Source of the DNA: Hemiscyllium ocellatum
Taxonomy: Eukaryota
Assembly: GCF_020745735.1 (NCBI RefSeq)
Contig: NC_083409.1
Span: 13,577,259-13,641,258 of the forward strand
Length of the DNA stretch: 64,000 bases
Reading direction: 5' to 3'
This document shows, piece by piece, positions 14,254 to 63,707 of this stretch (positions are counted from its first letter, which is position 1; the number at the start of each line of letters is the position of its first letter). The position numbers and the translations under genes were made by a program. Below the pieces are notes generated by a model. The model did no database searches and was not told the DNA's origin. It saw only the letters and a list, made by a program, of their open reading frames with translations.

Positions 14254-14582
14254 CTACACACATTCTGATCTCCTGATGCTCTTGCTGAGGGGAGAGGGGA
14301 GGGTCACGTGGGTGAGGGCACAGGAGAAGCGAGCGTTGGACTCCCAGTCAGACCCAGAGAGGGTCAGCAGGCTGCTGACACTGTAGGTGCTGTCCGAAGC
14401 TCGCAGGTAGTTGCTGGTCTGAACCCCATCCGAAATGACTGCACCGTCCTTCTTCCACTGCACCTCCAGCTCATCGGGATAGAAGTGATTGGCAAGGCAC
14501 ACCAGGGTGGCAGTGCCCTTGGCATTGACCTGCTCCAGGGAGGGGGGCAGCAGGGTCAGCTTGGGCTGAGAGTTGTCACGGA
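14254..14582 (-). CDS. IGKC: Immunoglobulin light-chain constant exon, kappa type (cluster 1)
   Basis: Acceptor tctttcag at 14590-14583; phase-1 exon encoding (I)RDNSQPKLTLLPPSLEQVNAKGTATLVCLANHFYPDELEVQWKKDG...YSVSSLLTLSGSDWESNARFSCALTHVTLPSPLSKSIRRSECV*. Both C1-set Cys, the Trp and the penultimate interchain Cys are present; no stop or frameshift. Confidence 0.96.
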
Positions 14583-15169
14583 CTGAAAGACAAGAGAAAC
14601 AATTTTAATCCCTGCCTTTTGAAGGTACATAAACTCTCTGAACATTAACTGCAAAAACGTTTGAACATTTGTACCCAGTACCTAGCAGACCTGACAAAGC
14701 ACTGGCATTTTAAAAATTGCTTTTTGGGACGTGTACGGCACTGGCAGAGCCAGTCGCTGCCCATCCCTAATTGTCCTTGAGAAGGTGATGGTGACGCAGC
14801 AGAATGATAAGGTACAGTCCTGGACCACCATTTAAGGAATGAATGTGGGCAGCTGGAAGGGCTATCAATGTGGGAGCATTTTAGTGACAGTGATCGGAAC
14901 TCAGTGAGATTGAGATTAGGGATGGAAATGGAGAACCGTGGAGCAAGTGTAAAAGTTTTGATTTGGGAACAATCCATTTTACCAAACTGTGTGGTAATTT
15001 GATAAAAGAGTACTGGAACCATCGACTTGATGGGAGATCAGTGACAGGGCAGTGGGAGGTCTCCAAGGATGAGACAGGCACAGAGATCATTCAGAATCTT
15101 TTCCCAAAAGAGTAAGAGTGGCACTCCCAAAGAGAGAGTCTCAGCAAAGATGTGAAACTATTGATATGA

Positions 15170-15385
15170 TGTGGAGGCTCTGGTGTCCGACTGGGGTGGA
15201 CATGTTCAGGAGTCACATGACACCAGGTTACAGTTCAACAGGTTTATTTAAAATCACGAGCTTGTGAAACGCTGCTCCATCTTCAGGTGAAGCGACTTCA
15301 GTGCTGAAGGAACAGAGCTCTGAAAGCTTGTGATTTGAAGTAAGCCTGTTGGACTATAACCTGGTGTCATGTGACTTCTGACCTC
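15170..15385. mobile_element. Palindromic pair of PLE pseudo-LTR fragments
   Basis: Arms GTCACATGACACCAGGTTA.AGT.CAACAGG and CCTGTTGGACTATAACCTGGTGTCATGTGAC are reverse complements; centre ~15291-15303 beside degenerate hammerhead cores. Confidence 0.7.
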
Positions 15386-16879
15386 AAATGAAGCCCCGTT
15401 AGAGCACAGTGAGAGAACTGTGTGCAGTTCTGGTCACCACATTGCAGGAAGGATGTGATCCCCCTAGAGATGGGGACAGTGGAAGATTTTGTCAGGAATG
15501 AGGAGTATTAGCTTTGAGGAATGATTGGTTTGGCTGGGACTAGTTTCTTTGGAACACAGGAGGCTGAGGGGAGATTTGATCGATGGTGTGTAAAATGATG
15601 AGGGGTTTGGATAGAGTGGGTAGGAAGGACTGATTTCCATCAGCACAGAGGGCAATAACCATGGGGAGAGATTGAAATGAATTGGGGGCAGGGTTCGAGG
15701 CGAGTTGAGGAGTAATTGTTTCACCCAGTGGCTGGTGGGATCAGGACCTCACTAGCTGAAAGGGTGAGAGCGGCAGAAACCCTCATCACATTGAAAAAAC
15801 ACTTGGATATTCACTTGAAACACCAAAGCCTCCAGAGCTATGGAGCAAGAGCTGGTATGTGGGGTGGAGTTCGACACCTCTTTAACAAACCTCCGATCAC
15901 TCACAGCTCGGGAGAACTTTATCCAACAATATTGGAGCAGAGTTGGATCAGCACACTTCAGGAAGGAGTCACGTTGGGTGTCCATGTAGAAGGTTCTAGA
16001 TTTTGTTTCAAATCTTCCAGCTCAGCGCTGGGGTAAGGTCAAATGTGAGGGTGCAAAGAGTCTCAGTGTCCCGGGATCAGACAGTGTCACTGCTCTTAAT
16101 GATCCCATGTTCCCTGGAAGATGGAAGCGTGTATCCAACGGGCAAGGGTCAGGTTCAGGAGACTCCAACCACAAAGAAAGACTTGCATTTATGTTGCACC
16201 TGCCTCCACCTAAGGATGTCGCAGTGGCTCTTTCCATCAGACTGTGCTCAGCAAGATCCCAGAGAGCTGGGTGACAATGAGGCGAGGATCCGATTTTTAG
16301 TGATGCTCATTAGGGAATCAATATTGACCAGGACACCAGGAGACACCGTCCTGCTGTCTGTCTAATAGAGCCATGGAATGGCATCTCTGATATCTGAAAG
16401 GCTCCCAGTGCATCAAAAGAGAGACTTGTATGTCAGGCTCTCCCAAAGCATTTACAGAGAGTGAGGGACTTGTCTGGACACTGGTCACTGTTGTAATGCA
16501 GAAAACACAATTTGTACACAGCAATATCGCGCAATCGTAAATGAGATTATGAAGCATGTTCAGTGATGTTTCAGGGATAAATATTGACCTGAAGTCAACT
16601 CAAAGAGAAAGCAAATGGGTTCACTTGCACAGAACGTGAGAAAATGAAAGGCACAGGAGAAAGTGGGAGTCGTGGTTAGTGATGGGTTTGATTGTTACCA
16701 GAAAATAAAAGGAAGGATCAGAATTTGTGAATGTCATATTGTAACAAGGCAATACAGACAGTAGAAATAACCTAAAGTCTTTGTATGATAACGCATTCGG
16801 AATAAGGTAGACAGAGTGATGCCACAAATTGAGGTTCCCAAAGACTTTAAAATCATTAAAGTGACGCAGGGCTCAGGAG

Positions 16880-18180
16880 AGGTTAGTAAAGTTTCCAGAA
16901 TAATTAATAGGACATAGATTATGGAAAGGGTCAGAAAATTAATTTTAGGCACAGTGCATAAGGGGACAACTATGAAAAGGAGGGTAGTCAATGCAGGACT
17001 GAGGGTGTTGTACCTGAATGCAGGGAGTATCCGAAATGAGGTAAATGAGCTTGTAGCGCAGATTGGAATTGGCAGGTATGATGTTTTGAGTATCACAGAG
17101 ACCTGGCTGTAAGGGGTTGAGGGCTGGGAATGAAATACTCAAGGATGCACATCCGATTGACAGGACATGCTGATGGGCAGATGGGGGTGGGGTTACCTTC
17201 TTGGTAAGAAATGAAATGAGATCAATCACAAGAAGGGATTTAGAGTTGGAATGCATTCAATCTGTGTGGGTAGAGTTGAGGAGTTGCAAGGGAGAAAGAG
17301 CATGATGAGAACTTAGCACAGGACCCCCCAGCAGCAGTCAGGATATGAGGAAGAAAATAAATCAGGTGATAGAGAAGGCCCTGCTATAATAGTCATGAGG
17401 GACTTCAATATGCAGGGAGACTGGAAAATTAAGTTGTTTGGGGATCTCAAGGGTAGGAATTAATGGAATGCTTACGACATGGTTTTTGGAGCAGCTTGTG
17501 GTAGAGATCACTATGGAACAGGCAATTCTGGATTGGGTGATGTGTATTGAAGCAGACCTGATTAGGGAACTTAGGGTGAAGGAATCCCTTGGGGGCATTG
17601 ACCGTAATATGACAGAATTCACCCTGCAGTTTGTGACAGAGAATCTGGAGTCAGTTGTACCGGTAATGCAATTAACTTAAGGTAACTACAAAGACATGGG
17701 GGAGGAGCTGGCCAGAGCTGGGAAGAAAGGAAGCTGAGCATAAGAGAGAATGGAGCAGCAATGGTAGGAGTTTCTGGGGGTAATTTGGGAGGCAGAGCAG
17801 GAATTTAACCCAAGGAAGAAGAAAGGTACTGAGTGGAGGCCAAGGCAACCATGGCTGATGAGGGAAGTCAGGGTCAGCATAAAAGCAAAAGAAAAAACAT
17901 GCAATGTGGTGAAGATTATTGGGAAGCCGGAGGATTGGGAAGCCTTTAAAAAACAGCAGAGAGTAACTAAAAAAAAGGTAAGGATGGGTGTGTAAATAAA
18001 ATATAAGGGTCAGCGAGTTAGTAACATAAAAGAGTATTGCAAGAGGTTTTCTTTAGATATATGAAAGGCAAGAGGGAGTCAATAATAGAAATTGTACCAC
18101 TGGAAAAGGCAGAAGTAGTAATGGGGAACAAAGAAATGGTGGAAAAAGTGCATCGGTGCCTTAAATCAGCTTTCACAGTA
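16880..18180 (+). mobile_element. Degenerate CR1 ORF2 endonuclease region (J-C intron)
   Basis: LYLNAGSIRNEVNEL...YDVLSITETWL apurinic-endonuclease motif; AILDWVMC; many stops. Confidence 0.8.
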
Positions 18181-18789
18181 GTGTGGCAATGCTGCTCATT
18201 TCACAAGTTTGAGTTGTCCTTGGATTTTTTTTTCAAGAGGGGTTGTAAAGGCAGAGGTTCCAATTTGTCTGGGTTAGGGACTTTGCTCATGTCTAACAGA
18301 TACTGCCTAAGGCAACAGTCAGGGAAAAGGCTTTTAGGTTTTATATTAAACACTTGTCCAATAAAAGGAGAGTGGCCAGTTCTTCCAGTTTGCTGTTTTT
18401 GACAAACAGTCGGTTGGAAGCTCCTGGATAAAGAAAGCTGCTGGTGAGAAAGGTTCCCCAATTCAACATTTTCCAGTGGACTCACTGTCTGAAATTCCTC
18501 TCCTGTAAGAACCCCTGTGTTTATATTTACCTTTTTGCCAAGGCTATTACAGCAAATTGGAACAACTCTTTGTCAAGTTACATTTTTTCGTCAGTTAGGT
18601 TTTCAAATAGTTAAGTTATTCTAAATTCTGTTTTCTTTTGATTGTAAATAAATACTCTTCTCCTTCAAGCTGAGTGGTTTGGCCAGTTGTATCATTCCTG
18701 GAATATCCAGGTTACATTTGCTGAACACAATTCGAAAAGGTAAGGTCTGGGCTGCATTCTTAAAATGTTTTGAAGGGTCTGGCCTGGTC

Positions 18790-20230
18790 CATAACAATGT
18801 CACAGAGTCCTACAGCATGGAGACAGGCCATTTGGACCAAACTGGTCCATGCCAACCAAAATGTCCATTTACGCTAATCCTACACTTGGCCCATATCCTT
18901 CTGAATCCTTTCCTTTGCTGTATTTGTCCAAATGCCTTTTAAATGTTATTAATGTACCCACCTCAACCACTTCCACTGGCAGCTCATTCCATATGCGAAC
19001 AATCCTATGTGTAAAAAGGTTGCCCCTCAGGTTCCCTTTTATTCTTTCCCCTCTAACCTTAAACTGATGCGCTCTAGCTCATATTCGCAAACCTTGGGGA
19101 AAAGACCGAGTGAATTCACCCTATCCATGCCTCTCATGATCTTATGAGGTCCTCCCTCAGTCTCCTACACTCTAAAGAAAAAAGTACTCTCCCTTTAACC
19201 CAAACGATTGAATCCTGGCAACATGCTTGCAAATTTCTTCTGCACTCTTTCCAGTTTAATAACATCCTTCCTGGAACAAGGTGACCAAAACTGAACACAA
19301 TATTCCAAGTGTGGCTTCATCAGTGTCCTGCATAACTGCAACATAACTTCCCAACATCTGTAGTCAATGCTCTGACTGATGAAGGGCACTGCAGAAAAAG
19401 CTCTCTTCTCTGCTCTATTTACTGTGACTCCATTTTCAGAGAACTGCTTATCTGAATTCTAAGGACCCTCTGTTCCATTATATTCCTTAAGGTCCTATCA
19501 TTCACCATGAAACTCCTACCTTGCTTTAAATTTCCAAAATACAAGACCTCACATTTGTCTGTATTAAACTCTATTTGTCATTTCTCGGCCCACTTCCCCA
19601 GCTGAGCAAGGTCCTGCTGCAATTTCTGATAACTGTCCGCACTGTCCACAATGCTGCTTATTTGAGTGTCATCAGCAAACTCACTAACCATGCCTTGTAC
19701 ATTCTCATCCAAAACATTGTTATAGATAACAAACAGCAATGGGCTCAGCACTGAACACTGAGGCACTCCACTAGTCACAGGCCTCCAGTACAATAAGGAT
19801 TCTTCCCCTATTACCCTGTGCTTTCTACCATCAAGCCAATCGTGTATCCAATTTGCCAGGTCACCTTGGATTCCATGCGATCTAACCTTCCATAACAGCC
19901 TACCATGTGGAACCTTATCAAAGGCCTCACTGAAATCCATATAGACCACGTCTACCATCCTGCCCTCATCAACCTTCCTGGTAAATTCATCAAAGTACCT
20001 TAACAAATTTGTGAGGCATATTCTCCCACTCACAAAGTCATGCTGACAACTCCTAATCAAATTCACTCTTTCCAAATGCATGTGTACCTTATCTTATCAA
20101 ACAACTTACCCACCACAAATGTTAAGCTTATAATTCCCAGGCATTTGTTTCTCAGCCCTTTTTGAACAATGGCACAATCTTCGCTATCCTCCAGTCTTCT
20201 GGCACCTCACCTGTGGCTAACCATGATGCT
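18790..20230 (-). mobile_element. CR1 LINE, RT and 3' end
   Basis: ORF 19578-20081: YMDFSEAFDKVPHG, GVPQCSVLSP, FADDTQ; ORF 19195-19389: HLEYCVQFWSP. Confidence 0.88.
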
Positions 20231-20259
20231 TAAATATCAGCCAGTACACCTGACCTTCA

Positions 20260-21890
20260 AGAGAGTTGGGAGCAAAAGTGAGTGGAAAGGGCATCACTAA
20301 GGTGGAGGGGTTGAGGCAGCTGAAAGGTCTGAAGGTGGATAAATCATTCAGACCCGATGGACTACACTCCAGAGTTCTGATGGAGATAGCTAAGGTAATT
20401 GTAGGGCCATTGGCTGTGATCTTTCAGAAATCACTGGAGTCAGGAGTGGTCCCAGAAGACTGGAAAATAGTGAATGTAACATCCCTGTTTAAGAAAGGAG
20501 GGAGGCAGAGATGGGACATTATAAGCTGGTTAGCCTGACCTCGGTCATTGGTAAGATTTTAGAGGTCTATCTAAGGGTGAGATTGCAGGTATTTGGAATC
20601 TCACCCTTAAGTCTGGTAAAATTGCAGCCTGGCAAAATTGGGCTGAGTCAGCACAGCTTCATCAAAGGGAGACATGCCTGATAAATCTGTTAGAAATCTT
20701 TGAGGAGGTAACAAGTGAGTTAGACAAAGGAGAGCCAGTGGATGTGATCCATTTGGATTTCCATCAGGCCTTTGACAGGGTACAATAAAGGAGACTGCTT
20801 AGTCAAATCAGAGCCCATGCTGTCAGGAGCAAGGCACTGCGAATTGTAGAGGATTGGCTGGCCGGCACAAAGGCGAGAGTAGGGACAAAGGGATTTTTTT
20901 CTGGATGGCTGGTGGTGCTTTGTGGTGATCCTCAGGGATCTGTGTTGGGACCACAACTATTCACATTATCCATTAACAATCTGGATAAGGAACTGAAGAT
21001 ATTGTTCATATGTTTGTAGATGACACAAAAATTGGTGAAAGGACAGGTGGAGTTGAGGAAGTGGGGGAGATTGCAGAAGGACTTGGTCAGGCTGGGAGAA
21101 TGTACAAAGAAGTGGCAGGTGGAGTACAATGCGGGGACTTGTGAGGCTAGATACTTTGGTGGGAAGAATAGAGACACAGAATGTTTTCTAAGTGAGGAAA
21201 GATTTCAGAAATCTGAAGCACAAAGAGAATTGGGAGTCCTTGCTCAAGTTTCTCTGAAGGTTAACGTGCAGATTCACCATTGGCTGTTTGAAAGGCAGTT
21301 ACAATGTTAGCATTAACTTTAACGTCAGAGGTGTACTGCTGCGTTTGTATAAGTCTGTAATCAGACCACATTTGGAATTTTGGTCTCCTTATTAAGGAAG
21401 GATGTGCTGTCATTGGAGAGGGTCCAGAGGAAAAAGAGAGAAAGAATAAGAATACTCCTGGGAATGAAGGGGGTGTCATATAAAGAGTGGTTGAGGATTC
21501 TGGATCTGTATACAATTGTGTTTAGAAAGATGACGGAGGAATCTTATTGAAACTACAGAATATTGAGAGGCCTGGAGAACATGGAGAAGGTGTTTCCACG
21601 AATAGAAGAAACTCGGGCCCAAAGGCAAAGCCTCAGAGTGAAGAATGATCCGTCAGAACTGAGGTAAGGAGGCATTTCTTCAGCCACAGGGTGGTGAATC
21701 TGCGGAACTCATTGTCACAGAGGTCTATGGATGCCAAGATGTTGAGAGTATTTAAAACAGAGACAGATCGGTTCTTGATCAGTAAGGAGATCAAAAGTTA
21801 AAAGGAGAATGGGGTTGAGAAACACATCACACAAGATCAAATGGCAGAGCAGACTCTCTTGTGACTGGCCCAATTCTGCTCCTATATCTT
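20260..21890 (+). mobile_element. Degenerate CR1 LINE, RT and 3' end
   Basis: LKVDKSFRPDGLHSRVL, PEDWKIVNVTSLFKKG and downstream RT remnants. Confidence 0.82.
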
Positions 21891-21940
21891 AAGTATTTTG
21901 GGTTTATGTAGAGGTTCCTTGAATCCCTGGAAAACTGGAA

Positions 21941-22280
21941 GTACAGTCACTTAGTGGTTAGCCCTGCTGCCTCACAGCGCTATGGGCCCAGGTTTGATTG
22001 TAGCCTCGGGCGTCTGTCTGTGTGGAGTTTGCATGTTCTCCCTGTGCCTGTGTGGGTTTCCTCCGGGTGCTCTGGCTTCCTCCCACAGTCCAAAGCTGTG
22101 CAGGTTCGGTGAATTGGCCATGCTAAATTGCCCATAGTGCAGGTTAGGTACATTAGTCAGGAGTAAATGGACGTTAAAAAGGTAGGGGAATGGGTCTGGG
22201 TGGGTTACTGTTCGGAGGGTCAGCGTGGACTTGTTGGACCAAATGGCCTGTTTCCATACTGTAGGAATTCTGTGATTGTA
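21941..22280 (+). mobile_element. HE1-type tRNA-derived SINE, near full length
   Basis: TAGTGGTTAGCCCTGCTGCCTCACAGCGC head with A/B-box-like region, TGTGTGGAGTTTGCA core and GGCCTGTTTCCATACTGTA tail; similar copy at 51771-52048. Confidence 0.85.
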
Positions 22281-22289
22281 TGGACATTG

Positions 22290-23520
22290 GAAGTACTGGT
22301 TTGTGGGCCCTGCTGTTGCTGTTTCTCAAAAGAACTTTGACAAAAGATAATCAGGGATTGGTGAGAGTGAGCATCAGGTTGCATGAGGGAACTGCTTGTC
22401 CTGCTTCCTGGAATACCATGAGTACAGGAAGTGTGGTCAGTGACAGCAGTTGGAACTCCGGGTTTCGGAGCTTGAGCAGCAGCTGGTGTCAGTGAGGAAC
22501 GTCCGTGAGGCTGAGAGCTCCGTAGAGAGCACGTTTCTAGATGTGGTCACTCTGCAGTTTCAGAGTATGCAGGGAGAGAGGGAATGGGGGAGCAGCAGAC
22601 AGTCCAAAAGGACCAGGCAGCTAGTACAGGAATCCCATGAGTGCATCCCACTCTCCAACCAGGATTCAGTTTGGAATCCTGATCAGAATGATGGTTCATC
22701 TGGGCAGTGCAGCCAGAGCCAAGTCCCTGCCACCATGGGGGGCTCAGCTGTACACGGGGGGCACAAGGAAGACTGGAAGAGCAATAGTGAGAGGAGATTC
22801 GAGAGTGAGGGCATCAATAGGTGTTTCTGCAGCTGCAGATGAGAATCCAGGATGGTGTGTTGTCTCCCTGGTGCCAGGGTGAAGGATGTCACTGAGCGAC
22901 TGCAGAGCACCCTGAGGGGAGAGGGGGAACAGGCAGCAGTCGTGGTCCACATCGGTCCCAGTGACAGTGGGAGAAAAGGGATGTGGTCCTCCAGTCAGAA
23001 TTTAGGGAGTTCCAGAGGGAATTAGCAGCAGGAGCTCAAAAGTAGGAATCTCCAAGATTACCCCCAGTGCCCCACACAACTGAGAATAGAAAGAGGAGGA
23101 TAGCACAGGTGACGGTGGAACTGAAAAGACAGTCCAGGAGGAAGGTCTTTCGATTATTTTAACATTGGGACTGGCTTTGGGGGGAGATGGACATGTACAG
23201 ACCAGACGGGTTGCTCCTGAACAGACCTGGGACTGAGTTCCTTTGGGGTGATTTACTCGTGCTGTTGGAGAGGGTTTAAACTATCTTGGCCTGTGGGATC
23301 CAGGAGCTAATACCAGAGAGGAACACAGAGGTGCACAGAATCCTGGGAGAGATAGATAGCACCAGAATAAGGAATAGAACTTCTGACCCAGTTTCAGAGT
23401 GAGGGAGAGAGAGTAATAAATTCTAAATCAGGGTCACTGTGTAAGGATGGGTCTGCACGGAGTGTTGGGAATAAGACTGGGAAGGTACAGCCACAGAGTG
23501 TTAAGTGGAAATCTGATGTG
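22290..23520 (+). mobile_element. CR1 LINE 5' part: ORF1 (zinc-finger-like and SGNH esterase regions) and start of ORF2, degenerate
   Basis: LRVSELEQQL..VR coiled-coil segment; TGTCTCCCTGGTGCCAGGGT and GTGGTCCACATCGGT esterase-region motifs shared with 43500-44130. Confidence 0.75.
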
Positions 23521-24101
23521 TGTCTCTCACATCGGAAGATAAGGTAATAAGAACATTAGAAATAGGAGCAGGAGTGGGCTATCTGACCCATTGAGGATGA
23601 GGGATGTTAGTTATGAAGATAGACCGAAGACGTTGGGACTGTTTTCCTCAGAGAAGAGAAGGCAGAGGGGAGATTTGATTGAGAAATTCAAAATCAGGAG
23701 GGGTCTGAACAGAGTAAACTAGGAGAAAATGTTCCCACCTGAGAAAGAATTGAGAGGGAGAGGCCATGGATTGAAAATAATTAGTAAAAGAGGCAAAAGT
23801 GAGATGAGTGCGAAACATTTTCAGCCAGTGGGTGGTTAAGGTGTGGAATGCACTGCCTGAGAGTGTGGTGGAGGCAGCTTCAATTGAAACATTCTGAAGG
23901 GAATGAGACTGTTATTTGAAAAGGAACAATGTGCAGGATGACAGGGAGAAGGCAGGAGAATGACACTCAGTGAATTGCTCATTCGGAGAGCCGGTCCAGA
24001 CAGGATGGGTGGAACGGCCTCCGTGTACACTGTAACAATTCTGTGATTGTGTGATTGAGCAGAGTTAAAGCTGGGGGAGGTGGGAGCTCGGTGTCTCACT
24101 G

Positions 24102-24136
<35 letters not shown>
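24102..24136. repeat. (CTG)n microsatellite in J-C intron, paralogous to 61910-61944
   Basis: 35-nt perfect trinucleotide tract; identical length in both clusters. Confidence 0.95.
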
Positions 24137-24497
24137 AGGTCAGTGAGATCAGGGACTGGGACAGGGAGCCAGAGCTCACATCAAACTCTGCCCCGTGTCC
24201 GTCACACTGAGACTGGCAGGAGGCTACTCACTGATTTCACTCCATGCTGCAGGAATGGGACCACAGGCTGCAAATGGACAGAGCTCCTCCACATGGTGAG
24301 TAAAGCTGACTGACTTATATCTTGCTGCTTAAGCAGGGCAATAGGACGACAGAAATACAGCTGGACACCCTGTTAGACACAGTGCTCCTCAATCATTCAC
24401 TGCAGCTCCCCACTAACACCTGCATCAATTCAGCATTTGTGATTTAGAAAGTTTCAGTATTGAAAGGGTTAATAACGGAGGATTGAGGTTTACTTAC

Positions 24498-25061
24498 TCA
24501 GTCTGAGCTTGGTTCCTTTACCGAACGTTAAGGCCAGCTGTAATCCTGCATACAGTAATAGTCAGCGACATCCTCATTCTGAATGTTGCTGATTGTCAGG
24601 GTGAAACTGGTCCCTGATCCACTGCCGGTGAATCGATCGGAGACTCCTGTGAATCGATTTGTTGCAGCATAGATCAGGAGAGAGGGTTTCTGACCTTCTC
24701 GCTGCTGGTACCAGGAAAGCTCATTGTTAACTGATTGACTGGCCGTACAGGTGATGGTTGCGGTCTGGCTCAGTCCCACTGACCGCACCGGGGGAGACTG
24801 AGTCATGATGATGTCCCTACTGATACCTGAGGGATCAGAGAGAAACACAGTGAAGTCAGAACTGTCACAGAAAGAGCCGGTCAAATGAGAGATTGTTGGA
24901 GACACTGAGCATTCCTCTGGTTTCAGCATTTTCCCATCAATCACAAGTCAGTGGAATTGGAGTGAAATGGAGAGCAGCTAAAGATTCAAGGTGGAAGGAG
25001 AGAGATTTGTACCTGCGACACAGAATGCCAGGGGCCAGATCAGCTGGATGTGTGAAATCAT
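24498..25061 (-). pseudogene. IGKV: Pre-joined, out-of-frame Ig kappa-type leader-VJ gene (cluster 1)
   Basis: Leader exon 25061-25013 (MISHIQLIWPLAFCVA/G), GT-AG intron of 186 nt, exon 24826-24498: [16 protein letters not shown]...[11 protein letters not shown] then TAA (24530-24528), fused directly to ACGTTCGGTAAAGGAACCAAGCTCAGACTGA/gtaagt, identical to the cluster 2 J. No heptamer or nonamer remains. Confidence 0.93.
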
Positions 25062-25120
25062 GGTGTGTGCTCCTGTCCCTGTGCCTGGTTCCTGATAAAC
25101 TCTCCCTTCACTGGGCTCTG

Positions 25121-25219
25121 CTTTATAAAGCTCCAGCCTGTGAGAGTCTGACTGGGTGTTCCTCAGTATGTAAATAGCATCAGGCAGAGAGAGCCACGTC
25201 AGCCCCTCACACTTCCTCT
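25121..25219 (-). promoter_or_regulatory. V promoter of cluster 1
   Basis: On minus strand: PU-box AGAGGAAGTG (25219-25210), TGACGTGG (25201-25194), octamer variant ATTTACAT (25175-25168), TATA-like CTTTATAAAG (25130-25121); same order and spacing as cluster 2. Confidence 0.7.
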
Positions 25220-26199
25220 TCTCTCTCTCTATCTCACTCTCTCTGTCTCAGAGTCATTGATGTGAACAGCACTGAATGAGGCCATTTGGCCCATTGTGTC
25301 TGTGCTGGTAAACAAAGATGTGATGACACTAATCTCATCCTCCAGCTCTTGGCCCATGACCCTGGAGGCAACAGCAACACAAGGGAATATCTAAACACTG
25401 CTCCAATGTCATGAGAGTTTGTGACTCAACCAGCCTTTCAGGCAGTGAGTTCCAGACTCCCACCACCCTCTGGGTGAAAACATTTCTCCTCAATTCTTCT
25501 CTCACTCTGCAACTCAACTGGGCCTGGATTCACTCAAGTTTATAAGGATGAGACGGAATCTATTTGAAACATATAAAAGTCTAACAGGCCCGGGCAGTAA
25601 GGAGGTTCCCCTGGTTGGGGAGTCTGGAACCAGGGGACACAGTCTCAGGGAGATACGGGGTAGAACATTTAGGACTGAGATGAGGAAACATTTCTTCACT
25701 CAGAGGATGGTCAACCTGATGAATTCTCTACCACAAACGGCTGTGGGGGACAAGGAACTGAATATATTCAAGAAAAAAAGAGAGATAGTTGTTTTGCATT
25801 TTAACAGCATGAAGGAAATAAGGAGAAAGCAGAAATATAGCAGTGAGAGAGAGGATCAGCCATGTCATACTGAATGACACACAAGATTCAAAGGGCTGAA
25901 TGGCCTACTCCTGCTCCAAGTCTCTATGAGACCATGTCTGTGTTACCTTCAATCTCTGTCCCTGGTTATTGAGTCCTTTACTCTTGTATAAAGTGCCTTC
26001 CTATGCAACGTATCACTGCCAACAATGATCTTATACCTCTCTATCAGGTCCCTCTCAACCTTCAATGCTCCAAGGAAAACAGCCCCAATCTTTCCAATCT
26101 TTCCTCATAGCTAACCCTCCATCCCAGGCAGCAGCCTGGGAAATCTCCTCTGCCCCCTCTCAAGTATAATCACATCCTTCCCAGAATGTTGTGACTAGG

Positions 26200-59198: not shown

Positions 59199-60304
59199 AA
59201 GAAAGAAAGAAAGAATGAGAGAGAGAGATAGAGGGACGAGCATCTGATACGGTGTAAGATATGTGAGCGGACCAAGACAGAGGTAGAAGGAGGTAAAAAT
59301 GGCGAGGTTGAGGGATAGAGAGAGAAACAAGATGTGACACAGTGTGACTGAGAGGGATGGAGAGAGACAAAAAGACAAGGAGAGAGAGAAAAAGAGACAG
59401 GATGGGTGTGAGACTAAGCATGAAGAGAGTTGAGAGGGAGGGTAGGGTTGAGTGTGAGAGAGAAAGAGAGATGAGTATGGGTAGATTTATAATGACAGAG
59501 AGAGAGGGAAAGAGACTGCAAATTGGGTTTGAGAGAGGGAAGGAGAGAGAAAGAGGGAGGAATAGAGAGTGACAGATAACAATTGGAGGCTTTTAATTGA
59601 AGTGAGAGAGGGAGCGAGTAACAGAGACAGTGAGAGATGGAGAAACAGATGATAAGATGGAGTAAGAAAGCATCAGTGAGTTGGAGAGAGTGGCTATGAG
59701 ACAGAGTGTGTGTGTGTGAGAGAGGGAGAGAACATGAAAGAGATTAACAGTGGGAGAGAGAGATAGAGGTAGAGAGAAAGAAATGGTAGATGTGAGTCAG
59801 AGAGAGAGAGGGACAAGTCCTGGTCACCACACTCTGGGAAGAATGTGATTGTACCTGAGAGGGTACAGGGGAGATTTCCCAGGATGCTGCCTGAATGTGA
59901 GCTTTGGGCACACCTCCTCCCTGCCCAGCCCTGTTAGAATTTTATATGTTTCAATCAGATCCCCTCTCATCGTTCTGAACACGAGTGAGTCCATGGCCAG
60001 GCGAGTTGGAGAGTGAAAGGAGAGTTGAGAAGAAATGTTTTCACCCAGAGGGTGGTGGGAGTCTGGAACTCACTGCCTTAAAGGCTGGTTGAGTCACAAA
60101 CTCTCGTGACATTGGAGCAGTGTTTAGATATTCCCTTGTGTTGCTGTAACCCCCAGGGTAATGGGCCAAGAGCTGGAGGATGGGATTAGTGTCATCAGAT
60201 CTTTGTTTACCAGCACAGACACAATGGACCAAATGGCCTCATTCAGTGCTGTTCACATCAATGACTCTGAGACAGAGAGAGTGACAGAGAGAGAGAGAGA
60301 GAGA

Positions 60305-60403
60305 AGAGGAAGTGTGAGGGGCTGACGTGGCTCTCTCTGCCTGATGCCATTTACATACTGAGGAACACCCAGTCAGACTCTCACAGGCTGCAGCTTTATA
60401 AAG
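60305..60403 (+). promoter_or_regulatory. V promoter of cluster 2
   Basis: AGAGGAAGTG (60305-60314), TGACGTGG (60323-60330), ATTTACAT (60349-60356), CTTTATAAAG (60394-60403), i.e. -158, -140, -114 and -69 from the ATG. Confidence 0.72.
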
Positions 60404-60462
60404 CAGAGCCCAGGGAAGGGAGAGTTTATCAGGAACCAGGCACAGGGACAGGAGCACACACC

Positions 60463-60511
60463 ATGATTTCACACATCCAGCTGATCTGGCCCCTGGCATT
60501 CTGTATCGCAG
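60463..60511 (+). CDS. IGKV: Ig light-chain leader exon (cluster 2)
   Basis: ATG...MISHIQLIWPLAFCIA/G then phase-1 donor gtacaa; 186-nt intron to ccctcag at 60697. Confidence 0.93.
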
Positions 60512-60697
60512 GTACAAATCTCTCTCCTTCCACCTTGAATCTTTCGCTGCTCTCCATTTCACTCCAATTCCACTGACTTGTGATTGAAGGGAAAATGCTG
60601 AAACCAGAGGAATGCTCAGTGTCTCCAACAATCTCTCATTTGACCGGCTCTTTCTGTGACAGTTCTGACTTCACTGTGTTTCTCTCTGACCCCTCAG

Positions 60698-60994
60698 GTA
60701 TCAGTGGGGACATCACCATGACCCAGTCTCCCCCGGTGCTGTCAGTGGAACTGGGCCAGACTGCAACCATCACCTGTAAGGCCAGTCAAAGCATTAGCAG
60801 CTACCTTGCTTGGTACCAGCAGCGAGAAGGTCAGAAACCCTCTCTCCTGATCTATTATGCAGCAACTCGATTCACAGGAGTCTCAGAGCGATTCACCGGC
60901 AGTGGATCAGGGACCAGTTTCACCCTGACAATCAGCAACGTTCAGAATGAGGATGTGGCTGACTATTACTGTCAGCAAGGTGACAGCTGGCCTT
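60698..60994 (+). CDS. IGKV: Unrearranged Ig kappa-type V exon (cluster 2), open frame
   Basis: [98 protein letters not shown]; conserved Cys, Trp and DYYC; mature domain starts at 60709. Confidence 0.96.
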
Positions 60995-61022
60995 CACAGT
61001 GATACAGAACTGAACAAAAACC
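60995..61022 (+). other. 12-bp-spacer recombination signal sequence of V
   Basis: CACAGTG-ATACAGAACTGA-ACAAAAACC: consensus heptamer and nonamer, 12-nt spacer. Confidence 0.97.
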
Positions 61023-61460
61023 TCAATACATAAAGCACTACCTCCTGTCCTGACACATCCCACAGTTACATAAAATGTATAATAATGGACACACAGTCCC
61101 ACCGCCTGAACTGATATATCCACAGTTAGATCTAAACGAAATTGATCAAATTACCCCAAACTAGGATTGGCACTGTCCACGACACACTCCAATCCCTGTG
61201 GTGTCTCAACGGTCACTGAAAGCCTCAAGTTTCCCTCTTACATTCCATGGCCACATGTGAAGAGCAGCTGCAAGATTTAACATCGAAAAATAAATTTCAC
61301 AAACCTCCCGAGCCCAGCTGGAAACAACCCAGAGAGACAGAGAGAGAAAGACACATGAATGAGGGAGAGACAGAGAGGGGCAGGGAGAGGGTGAGAGTGA
61401 GTGAGAGACAGATAGAGACAGGGAGAGGTTGACAGTGATAAGTGGGAAGCAGAGAGCTGA

Positions 61461-61499
61461 GGTTTTTGTACAGCCTCTGCACTGGGAGCTCTCACTGTG
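61461..61499 (-). other. 23-bp-spacer recombination signal sequence of J
   Basis: GGTTTTTGT (61461-61469), 23-nt spacer, CACTGTG (61493-61499). Confidence 0.97.
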
Positions 61500-61534
61500 G
61501 TACACGTTCGGTAAAGGAACCAAGCTCAGACTGA
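61500..61534 (+). CDS. IGKJ: Ig light-chain J segment (cluster 2)
   Basis: G TAC ACG TTC GGT AAA GGA ACC AAG CTC AGA CTG A = YTFGKGTKLRL (FGXG motif), followed by donor gtaagt. Confidence 0.96.
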
Positions 61535-61909
61535 GTAAGTAAACCTCAATCCTCTGTTATTAACCCTGTCAATACTGAAACACACTTTCTAAAATACAGT
61601 TGCTGATTTGTTGAAGGTGTTAGTGGGAAGCTGCAGTGAATGAAATGGTTGATTGAGGAGCACTGTGTCTAACAGGGTGTCCATCTGTATTTCTTTACAT
61701 TCATACCCTCTTTAAAAAAAGCAAGATATAAGTCAGTCAGTTTTACTCACTGTGTGGAGGAGCTCTGTCCATTTACAGCCTGTGGTCCCATTCCTGCAGC
61801 ATGGAGTGAAATCAGTGAGTAGCCTCCTGCCAGTCTCAGTGTGACGGACACGGGGCAGAGTTTGATTTTAGCTCTGGCTCCCTGTCCCAGTCTCTGATCT
61901 CACTGACCT

Positions 61910-61944
<35 letters not shown>
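61910..61944. repeat. (CAG)n microsatellite in J-C intron of cluster 2
   Basis: 35-nt perfect tract, reverse complement of 24102-24136. Confidence 0.95.
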
Positions 61945-62399
61945 CAGTGAGACACCGAGCTCCCACCTCCCCCAGCTTTAACTCTGCTCAATCACACAAT
62001 CACAGAACTGTTACAGTGCACAAGGAGGCCATTCCATCCATCCTGTCTGGACTAGCTCTCCGAATGAGCAATTCACTGAGTGTCATTCTCCTGCCTTCTC
62101 CCTGTCACCCTGCACGTTGTTCCTTTTCAGATAACAGTCTCATTCCCTTCGGAATGTTTCAATTGAAGCTGCCTCCACCACACTCTCAGGCAGTGCATTC
62201 CACACCTTAACCACCCACTGGCTGAAAATGTTTTCCCTCATCTCACTTTTCTTACTTTTCCAATTACTTTCAATCTGTGGCCTCTCGGTCTCAATCCTTT
62301 CACAAGTGGAATCATTTTCTCCCTATTTACTCTGTTCCAGGCCCCCTCCTGATTTTGAATTTCTGGAACAATTCTCCTCGCTGCCTTCTCCAAAGACTT

Positions 62400-63519: not shown

Positions 63520-63707
63520 NNNNNNNNNNNNNNNNNNNNNNNNNNNNNNNNNNNNNNNNNNNNNNNNNNNNNNNNNNNNNNNNNNNNNNNNNNNNNNNNN
63601 NNNNNNNNNNNNNNNNNNNNNNNNNNNNNNNNNNNNNNNNNNNNNNNNNNNNNNNNNNNNNNNNNNNNNNNNNNNNNNNNNNNNNNNNNNNNNNNNNNNN
63701 NNNNNNN
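63520..63707. other. Assembly gap (188 N) within a minus-strand CR1 fragment
   Basis: Run of N; both flanks are CR1 RT sequence. Confidence 0.98.

Follow-up and report, generated by a model that had tools for sequence, protein, structure and literature searches.

A kappa light-chain cluster of the epaulette shark with an out-of-frame VJ joint that probably formed in the germ line

A 64,000-nucleotide stretch of the genome of Hemiscyllium ocellatum (hereafter, the window) contains an immunoglobulin kappa (NS4/type III) light-chain cluster, on the minus strand, in which the V segment (V1) is joined straight to J. We consider it likely that this cluster (cluster 1) is a germline-joined gene with a RAG-type coding joint, which was non-productive from birth and has since drifted as a pseudogene. 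The window also contains a split cluster from the same family (cluster 2, with V2 and J2), which shows what cluster 1 has lost.

Cluster 1 has the parts of a complete gene. An octamer-like promoter motif (ATTTACAT, 25168..25175, minus strand) was read directly and is also present in cluster 2 and in split genes from Chiloscyllium; it is a putative promoter element by its position only. TATAAA lies 3' of it (25127-25122, minus strand). The leader exon (25013..25061, minus strand) is intact, begins with ATG at 25061, and is 100% identical to the leaders of kappa proteins from nurse shark and Hemiscyllium. The leader intron (24827..25012, minus strand; 186 bp, GT..AG) is retained and is 98.4% identical to that of cluster 2. 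The V part of the joined VJ exon (24530..24826, minus strand) has no internal stop or frameshift and ends with TGGCCTT. The J part (24498..24528, minus strand) reads ACGTTC GGT AAA GGA ... CTGA and, from ACGTTC onwards, matches the J segment of cluster 2 at 30 of 30 positions. Directly after J, a GTAAGT donor (24497, minus strand) begins a J-C intron of about 9.9 kb (14583..24497, minus strand), whose first 840 bp are 93.3% identical to cluster 2. An intron of this length is usual for the family: the spans of two kappa gene models from Hemiscyllium are 9.2 and 9.8 kb. The kappa C exon (14254..14582, minus strand) has an AG acceptor, is open for 108 codons (14582-14257), and ends with SECV and TAG; it is the only C exon within the window. 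In short, no damage is seen in the leader, the splice sites, either of the V cysteines, J, or C, and the sole fault is a 5-nt joint with a TAA.

The junction reads, on the minus strand from 24545 to 24512, TAC AGC TGG CCT TAA CG TTC GGT AAA GGA. Five nucleotides (TAACG) separate CCT from the J codon TTC, which puts J one base out of step. In the V frame, the TAA (24530-24528) acts as a stop, and reading through it gives ...WP-stop-RSVKEP. The letters in the assembly (CCTTAACG) are thus the out-of-frame form. Within the coding joint itself (CCTT-A-ACG, 24526..24533, minus strand), base 24529, and perhaps also 24528, is unaccounted for by the ends of V2 and J2. A search for a heptamer or nonamer between V and J of cluster 1 found none, and the only two recombination signal sequences (RSS) in the window flank V2 and J2.

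We made other observations on cluster 1. The J-C intron contains some 12 units of a (GCT)n/(CTG)n repeat (24100-24137), about 360 bp downstream of J, and LINE-type reverse-transcriptase open frames (19581-20093, minus strand; 20266-20538, plus strand), which account for part of its 9.9 kb. Splicing J to C as read (24498 with 14581-14584) forms the codon A/TC, or isoleucine, at the boundary, where relatives have serine or asparagine (RLS-RDN...); either a further change specific to this cluster or the use of another acceptor might explain the difference. Finally, 25131-25136 reads CTGGAG in cluster 1 and CTGCAG both upstream of V2 and in L001, a split gene from Chiloscyllium punctatum, so cluster 1 is without this PstI site. 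The change is among the few non-coding changes that are unique to V1. To size joined fragments in nurse shark, Lee et al. made use of an upstream PstI site, of which the missing site appears to be the counterpart.

Both V1 and the C exon group with the kappa/NS4 type, and V, J, and C each occur once per cluster. Kappa-type V regions from Chiloscyllium punctatum and Hemiscyllium ocellatum, and that of the nurse shark NS4 chain, share 82-86% identity with V1. The protein encoded by the C exon is 98% identical to two kappa models from H. ocellatum and 92.5% identical to nurse shark NS4 C; over the kappa proteins of nurse shark, Hemiscyllium, and Chiloscyllium, its identity ranges from 92 to 98%. 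An exact look-up of the V1 open frame in public assemblies found no record. We also considered L001 as a split orthologue of V1, and rejected it: although its CDR3 and the start of its J-C intron resemble V1, overall it is 92.6% identical to V1, as against 92.8% for V2.

Cluster 2 lies on the plus strand and is unrearranged. Its leader, 186-bp leader intron, and V exon (60463..60994) are followed by a 505-bp intervening segment (60995..61499), which lies between a 12-RSS (60995-61022) and a 23-RSS (61461-61499), and then by a J segment (61500..61534) that starts with GTACACGTTC. With a slash at the coding border, the V side reads TGGCCTT/CACAGTG-12-ACAAAAACC (RSS at 60995-61022) and the J side reads GGTTTTTGT-23-CACTGTG/GTACACGTTCGG (61461-61510). 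There is an N run (63520-63707) in the J-C intron of cluster 2, and its C exon falls outside the window.

When the two clusters were compared by blastn, 59912-60997 aligned to 25606-24527 and 61504-62390 aligned to 24528-23656. Cluster 1 is without exactly the 505-bp heptamer-to-heptamer segment that cluster 2 keeps, and nothing else is missing. From both sides, the homology breaks at 24527/24528; relative to V2, the V end is untrimmed, and the J end is trimmed by 4-5 nt. Both breakpoints are 0-5 nt from heptamer borders, which is not expected from a chance deletion. Cluster 1 has no RSS remnant, its endpoints are at the heptamer/coding borders, and its genomic context is retained, all of which is typical of germline-joined genes. 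An origin as a retrocopy was rejected, as the promoter, the leader intron, and the J-C intron are present. We also looked in the window for a retained or reintegrated signal joint, and found a single match, at chance level, inside a LINE. These results bear out much of an initial sequence-only reading of the region, which had described V1 as joined to J out of frame, with a stop at the junction and with no RSS or spacer, and which had correctly given the V end (TGGCCTT, before the heptamer) and the J start of the unrearranged paralogue. Its proposal of a RAG-type coding joint is supported by the exact loss of the 505-bp segment.

The divergence between the two clusters is uneven. The upstream 400 bp are 96.7% identical, the leader exon 98%, and the leader intron 98.4%. 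The V exon is only 90.2% identical: 21 of 76 CDR bases differ, as do 10 of 210 framework bases. Put by region, the promoter, leader, and leader intron (25062-25461 and 24827-25012) are 97-98% identical, the J-C intron (23659-24498) is 93% identical, and the CDRs are about 72% identical. To judge by this pattern, the 5' part may have been homogenised within the family, the CDRs may have undergone diversifying change, or both. We considered dating the join from the divergence of V1 and V2, but rejected this because the J-C intron, at 93%, is at odds with the 97-98% of the 5' part.

We infer the following history for cluster 1. In the germ line or in the early embryo, RAG would have cleaved at both the 12-RSS and the 23-RSS of what was then a normal split V-J-C cluster. 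The piece of about 505 bp that carried both RSS would have been lost, and the coding ends joined by the usual end-joining route. J would have been trimmed by about 4-5 nt, with one base, or at most two, unaccounted for by the V2 and J2 coding ends. Between CCT and TTC, 5 nt would have remained where an in-frame joint has 3 or 6, and the gene would therefore have been non-productive from birth. Later it would have drifted as a pseudogene while keeping its promoter, introns, and C exon. With at most one or two unexplained bases and no stretch of N nucleotides, the joint is like published germline joints and unlike joints in shark cDNAs.

We also examined sequencing runs. In contigs of DNA runs from related sharks or the same sharks, the position of the joint is spanned without an RSS. 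In particular, a contig from run X3 (24451-24572) crosses the joint with 9 mismatches and 1 gap, and a contig from run X36 (24474-24576) crosses it with no gap and with T>A at 24529, which gives CCTTTACG on the gene strand. Joined kappa genes are therefore present in these runs. The exact letters of the cluster 1 joint rest on one assembly. Each of the indexed runs contained at most 43% of the sampled words from a 601-bp stretch, and at most 3 of the 6 words across the joint. Short contigs from four runs (Logan; about 100-300 bp, from a multi-copy family) had only the family letter at 24727, 24732, 24770, 24784, and 24818; because Logan contigs lose rare variants in multi-copy families, the non-detection of the V1 letters there is not evidence of their absence. 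In another contig from run X36, with a depth of 154 (24528-24579), J meets framework 3 through 16 letters, not 50 (...CAG/TATTACAGCTGGCCTT/ACGTTC). It appears to be a joined gene that has lost 34 nt, including the end of framework 3 and the conserved cysteine, and whose joint is one A shorter than that of V1.

A second joined gene is indicated by a protein model. We searched for other models with an out-of-frame reading of J, and found only P0003, from H. ocellatum (GCA_020745735.1, on a 116-Mb chromosome), which reads ...CMQHSSWP-L-RSVKEP..., with J in the same wrong frame as in V1. Another model from this assembly, P0041, on an unplaced contig of 72 kb, is identical to P0003 in V (115 residues) and C. 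However, P0041 reads through an intervening segment and the J-RSS into W-LTFGKG, so it represents a split gene (J flank GCTTACGTTC). The gene span is 9753 bp for P0041 and 9235 bp for P0003; that is, the split twin is 518 bp longer. The deduced joint of P0003 is CCTT + TACGTTC, with no added base and out of frame from birth, which agrees with a contig from run X36. As judged from the protein models and that one contig, P0003 and P0041 may be a joined/split pair of very recent origin, either two alleles or a very recent duplicate. P0003 resembles V1 in its joint (WP-L-RSVKEP, from CCT TTA CGT, as compared to WP-stop-RSVKEP, from CCT TAA CGT) and in its span of about 9-10 kb. It differs in that its V is only 83% identical to V1 and in that a split twin is known.

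How the extra A in the V1 joint arose depends on how the coding ends of the progenitor read. We examined four split relatives from C. punctatum at the DNA level (L001 to L004). In three of the four, CCT TGA lies directly before the heptamer (L001:2350-2366, L002:3240-3256, and L003:930-946, all on C. punctatum contigs); L004 ends with CTTTA. With CCT TGA abutting the heptamer, an untrimmed join would always contain a stop; a productive one requires the removal of at least 2 nt. L001, which is among the genes that end with CCTTGA, has nearly the CDR3 of V1 (...GATTACAGCTCCCCTTGA). Its heptamers are degenerate on both sides (CACAATG, 2360-2366; CAAAGTG, 2803-2809), and its rearrangement may have become inefficient. 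Still other V ends (CCTTGG, CCTCG, and CCTGT) are implied by protein models whose reading continues through the RSS. The J flanks vary as well: the letters before ACGTTC are GTAC, GTTC, GCTT, or GCAT. None of the observed flanks has an A before ACG, so on all of the observed ends, at least one base of the joint is not templated by J.

Given these ends, CCTTAACGTTC can be derived in several ways: from CCTT, a P nucleotide or two (A or AA), and a trimmed J; from an untrimmed end of the CCTTGA or CCTTAA type and CGTTC, with at most one G>A change; from a trimmed V and an untemplated A; from CCTT + TACGTTC, followed by T>A; or from an in-frame CCT TAC ACG TTC that lost a C. The extra A may therefore be a P nucleotide, may come from the V template, or may reflect a change after joining, and the claim that it is a P nucleotide is under-determined. 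The sequence-only reading had favoured P-nucleotide chemistry, which is a sub-case of germline joining and not an alternative to it: the hairpin on an untrimmed CCTT end would have opened off-centre to leave A or AA, J would have been trimmed by 4 or 5 nt, and no N nucleotides would have been added. We view this account as tentative. V2, in the same window, does end with CCTT before its heptamer, and A or AA is the palindrome of TT; the split model P0041, from the same assembly, also implies a CCTT end; and Lee et al. inferred a 2-base P region in the joined genes R7 and R4. The proposed derivation (full V end, A or AA, and J trimmed by 4-5 nt) therefore fits the ends of V2 and J2, but it requires a V2-like progenitor. 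Three of the four split C. punctatum genes end with CCTTGA instead, including the one whose CDR3 is so close to that of V1; the protein models imply yet other ends; and these allow other derivations. If the progenitor had a longer end, then either V was trimmed, which excludes a P nucleotide by definition, or the A was templated by V. Also, a single base will match any prediction 25% of the time by chance. A V-templated stop is possible but somewhat doubtful: an untrimmed progenitor end of CCTTGA or CCTTAA would have been joined to a J that had lost 5 nt (CGTTC), with no more than a single later G>A and with no P or N nucleotides. Ends of this type (CCTTGA/CACAGTG) are seen in L001, L002, and L003, and CCTTGA + CGTTC is 11 nt, which is the observed length. 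However, we did not see any CCTTAA end, a CCTTGA end requires an extra substitution, and the only split V in the window ends with CCTT.

The remaining alternatives question whether cluster 1 was broken from the start or was inherited at all. That it was non-productive from birth, as the sequence-only reading had proposed, is the most likely case, because the single frame defect in about 700 coding nucleotides sits exactly at the joint. Imprecise joining gives the wrong frame two-thirds of the time, while a random 1-bp loss would have about a 1% chance of falling at the joint. With the frame fault in the joint itself, other disabling lesions are not needed. Alternatively, the join might first have been in frame (CCTT + ACACGTTC, or CCT TAC ACG TTC, encoding Pro-Tyr-Thr-Phe) and one C might then have been lost, either by mutation or as a 1-bp error in the consensus. 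The true letters would be CCTTACACG or CCTTTAACG if the assembly had an indel error; an in-frame joint before the loss would have been CCTTACACG. The ends of V2 and J2 suffice for this scenario, with J trimmed by 2 nt and no added base, and the read data are compatible with an assembly indel. Nevertheless, we consider it improbable: besides the 1% chance that a 1-bp loss falls within the few bases of the joint, the C is not in a homopolymer, the radical replacements in the framework of V1 (described below) argue against selection on the gene, and P0003, another gene of this assembly, shares the wrong frame at its joint. A somatic origin, in which the assembler captured a non-productive allele from a B cell that is not inherited, seems very improbable. 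It is true that non-productive VJ joints are common in B cells, that the letters specific to V1 are absent from the contigs of all four runs, and that the point changes unique to V1 could, in principle, reflect somatic hypermutation. But any single B-cell joint is present in a tiny fraction of cells and should not win the consensus within a chromosome-scale scaffold. Also, somatic kappa joints in sharks usually contain stretches of N nucleotides, as seen in cDNAs, and the joint of V1 does not; by our own reading, the changes unique to V1 are not at AID hotspot motifs; and germline joining in this same family has been proved in nurse shark. We therefore favour inherited DNA.

Changes elsewhere in V1 bear on its age. 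At positions that are invariant in 25 relatives (from at least 7 species), V1 has three unique replacements: G20R (24818), which adjoins the leader cleavage site; L32R (24784), at framework-1 Leu11; and G37S (24770), at Gly16. Other sequences typically have zero or one unique replacement at invariant positions. All four of the lineage-specific changes in the framework of V1 are non-synonymous, as compared to 2-3 unique changes in about 316 non-coding bases. Although these numbers are small, they suggest that V1 is unconstrained and is a pseudogene of some age. The unique replacements also argue against a working gene that was spoiled only by a consensus error. The sequence-only reading had taken the intact C exon as a sign that the event was recent, which we do not support: besides the three radical replacements, we estimate that, at a lineage divergence of about 1%, some 650 coding bases would on average take far less than one disabling hit, so an intact C exon tells us little about age.

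Germline-joined antibody genes are the main evidence for RAG acting on inherited DNA and reshaping antigen-receptor loci during evolution. One further broken example adds little by itself; the genome-wide pattern is of more interest. We speculate that the kappa array of the epaulette shark holds a series of independent out-of-frame germline VJ joints, including V1 and P0003, with at least one joined/split pair that may be alleles. If so, then germ-line rearrangement of antibody genes by RAG continues in a living shark, and the broken joints would be a sample of germline coding-joint chemistry (trimming, P bases, and the absence of TdT) that is free of selection. Within the limited body of literature that we searched, nothing since 2017 surveys joined kappa genes across a whole genome. 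A chromosome-level assembly, unlike cloning in 2000, makes it possible to count all of the joined and split kappa clusters, to pair each joint with its nearest split relative, and to read joints that were never filtered by selection for the reading frame. The apparent pair of P0003 and P0041 would be the best place to view a joining event close to its origin.

Germline joining takes other forms in cartilaginous fish. The lambda/type II genes in all elasmobranchs studied, and the sigma-cart/type I genes in skates, are uniformly germline-joined (Anderson et al. 1995, PMC2192082; PMC5192425). As in cluster 1, V is fused to J inside a V-J-C cluster, in DNA that is inherited, as that of cluster 1 probably is. 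However, those genes are in frame, fixed, expressed, and old, whereas V1 is a sporadic broken member of a family that is mostly split. Non-productive VJ kappa joints in B lymphocytes resemble V1 in another way: they arise by cleavage at the RSS, opening of hairpins, and trimming, and two-thirds of them are out of frame. Unlike V1 as we read it, they are somatic and clonal and are not inherited, and in sharks they usually have N additions.

The closest precedent is the nurse shark. Lee, Fitch, Flajnik, and Hsu (J Exp Med 2000, PMC2193156) described six germline-joined genes among about 50 NS4 genes, namely R4, R7, R18, and RE18 and the pseudogenes R6 and R19; the germline-joined genes of nurse shark that the sequence-only reading had cited were thus already known from this study. 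R19 would regain its frame if one base were taken out of CDR3. Lee et al. inferred a minimum of five independent joining events, 0-49 Myr in age; they read P regions in both R7 and R4, and TdT had left few signs, while shark somatic or cDNA kappa joints usually contain N additions (PMC2193156). They concluded that RAG is still changing the genome, an account that reviews repeat. The nurse shark genes have a leader intron of 186 bp and a V-J segment of 502-524 bp (PMC2193156), figures that the 186-bp introns and the 505-bp segment in the window match. The joined NS4 genes resemble cluster 1 in the type of light chain, in the layout of the cluster, in the 186-bp leader intron, and in the loss of a segment of about 500 bp with no RSS remnant. 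Their joints also have few or no N nucleotides, and two out of these six genes are non-functional, one of them by a frame fault in CDR3. Besides the species, there are two differences. To restore the frame, V1 would need one base added or two removed, where R19 needs one removed. And germline origin was proved in nurse shark by cloning from erythrocyte DNA and by Southern blots, in several animals (PMC2193156), while for V1 we infer it. Overall, V1 is the kind of event that has been described in sharks since 2000, for which germline joints, out-of-frame pseudogenes, and inferred P regions were already known.
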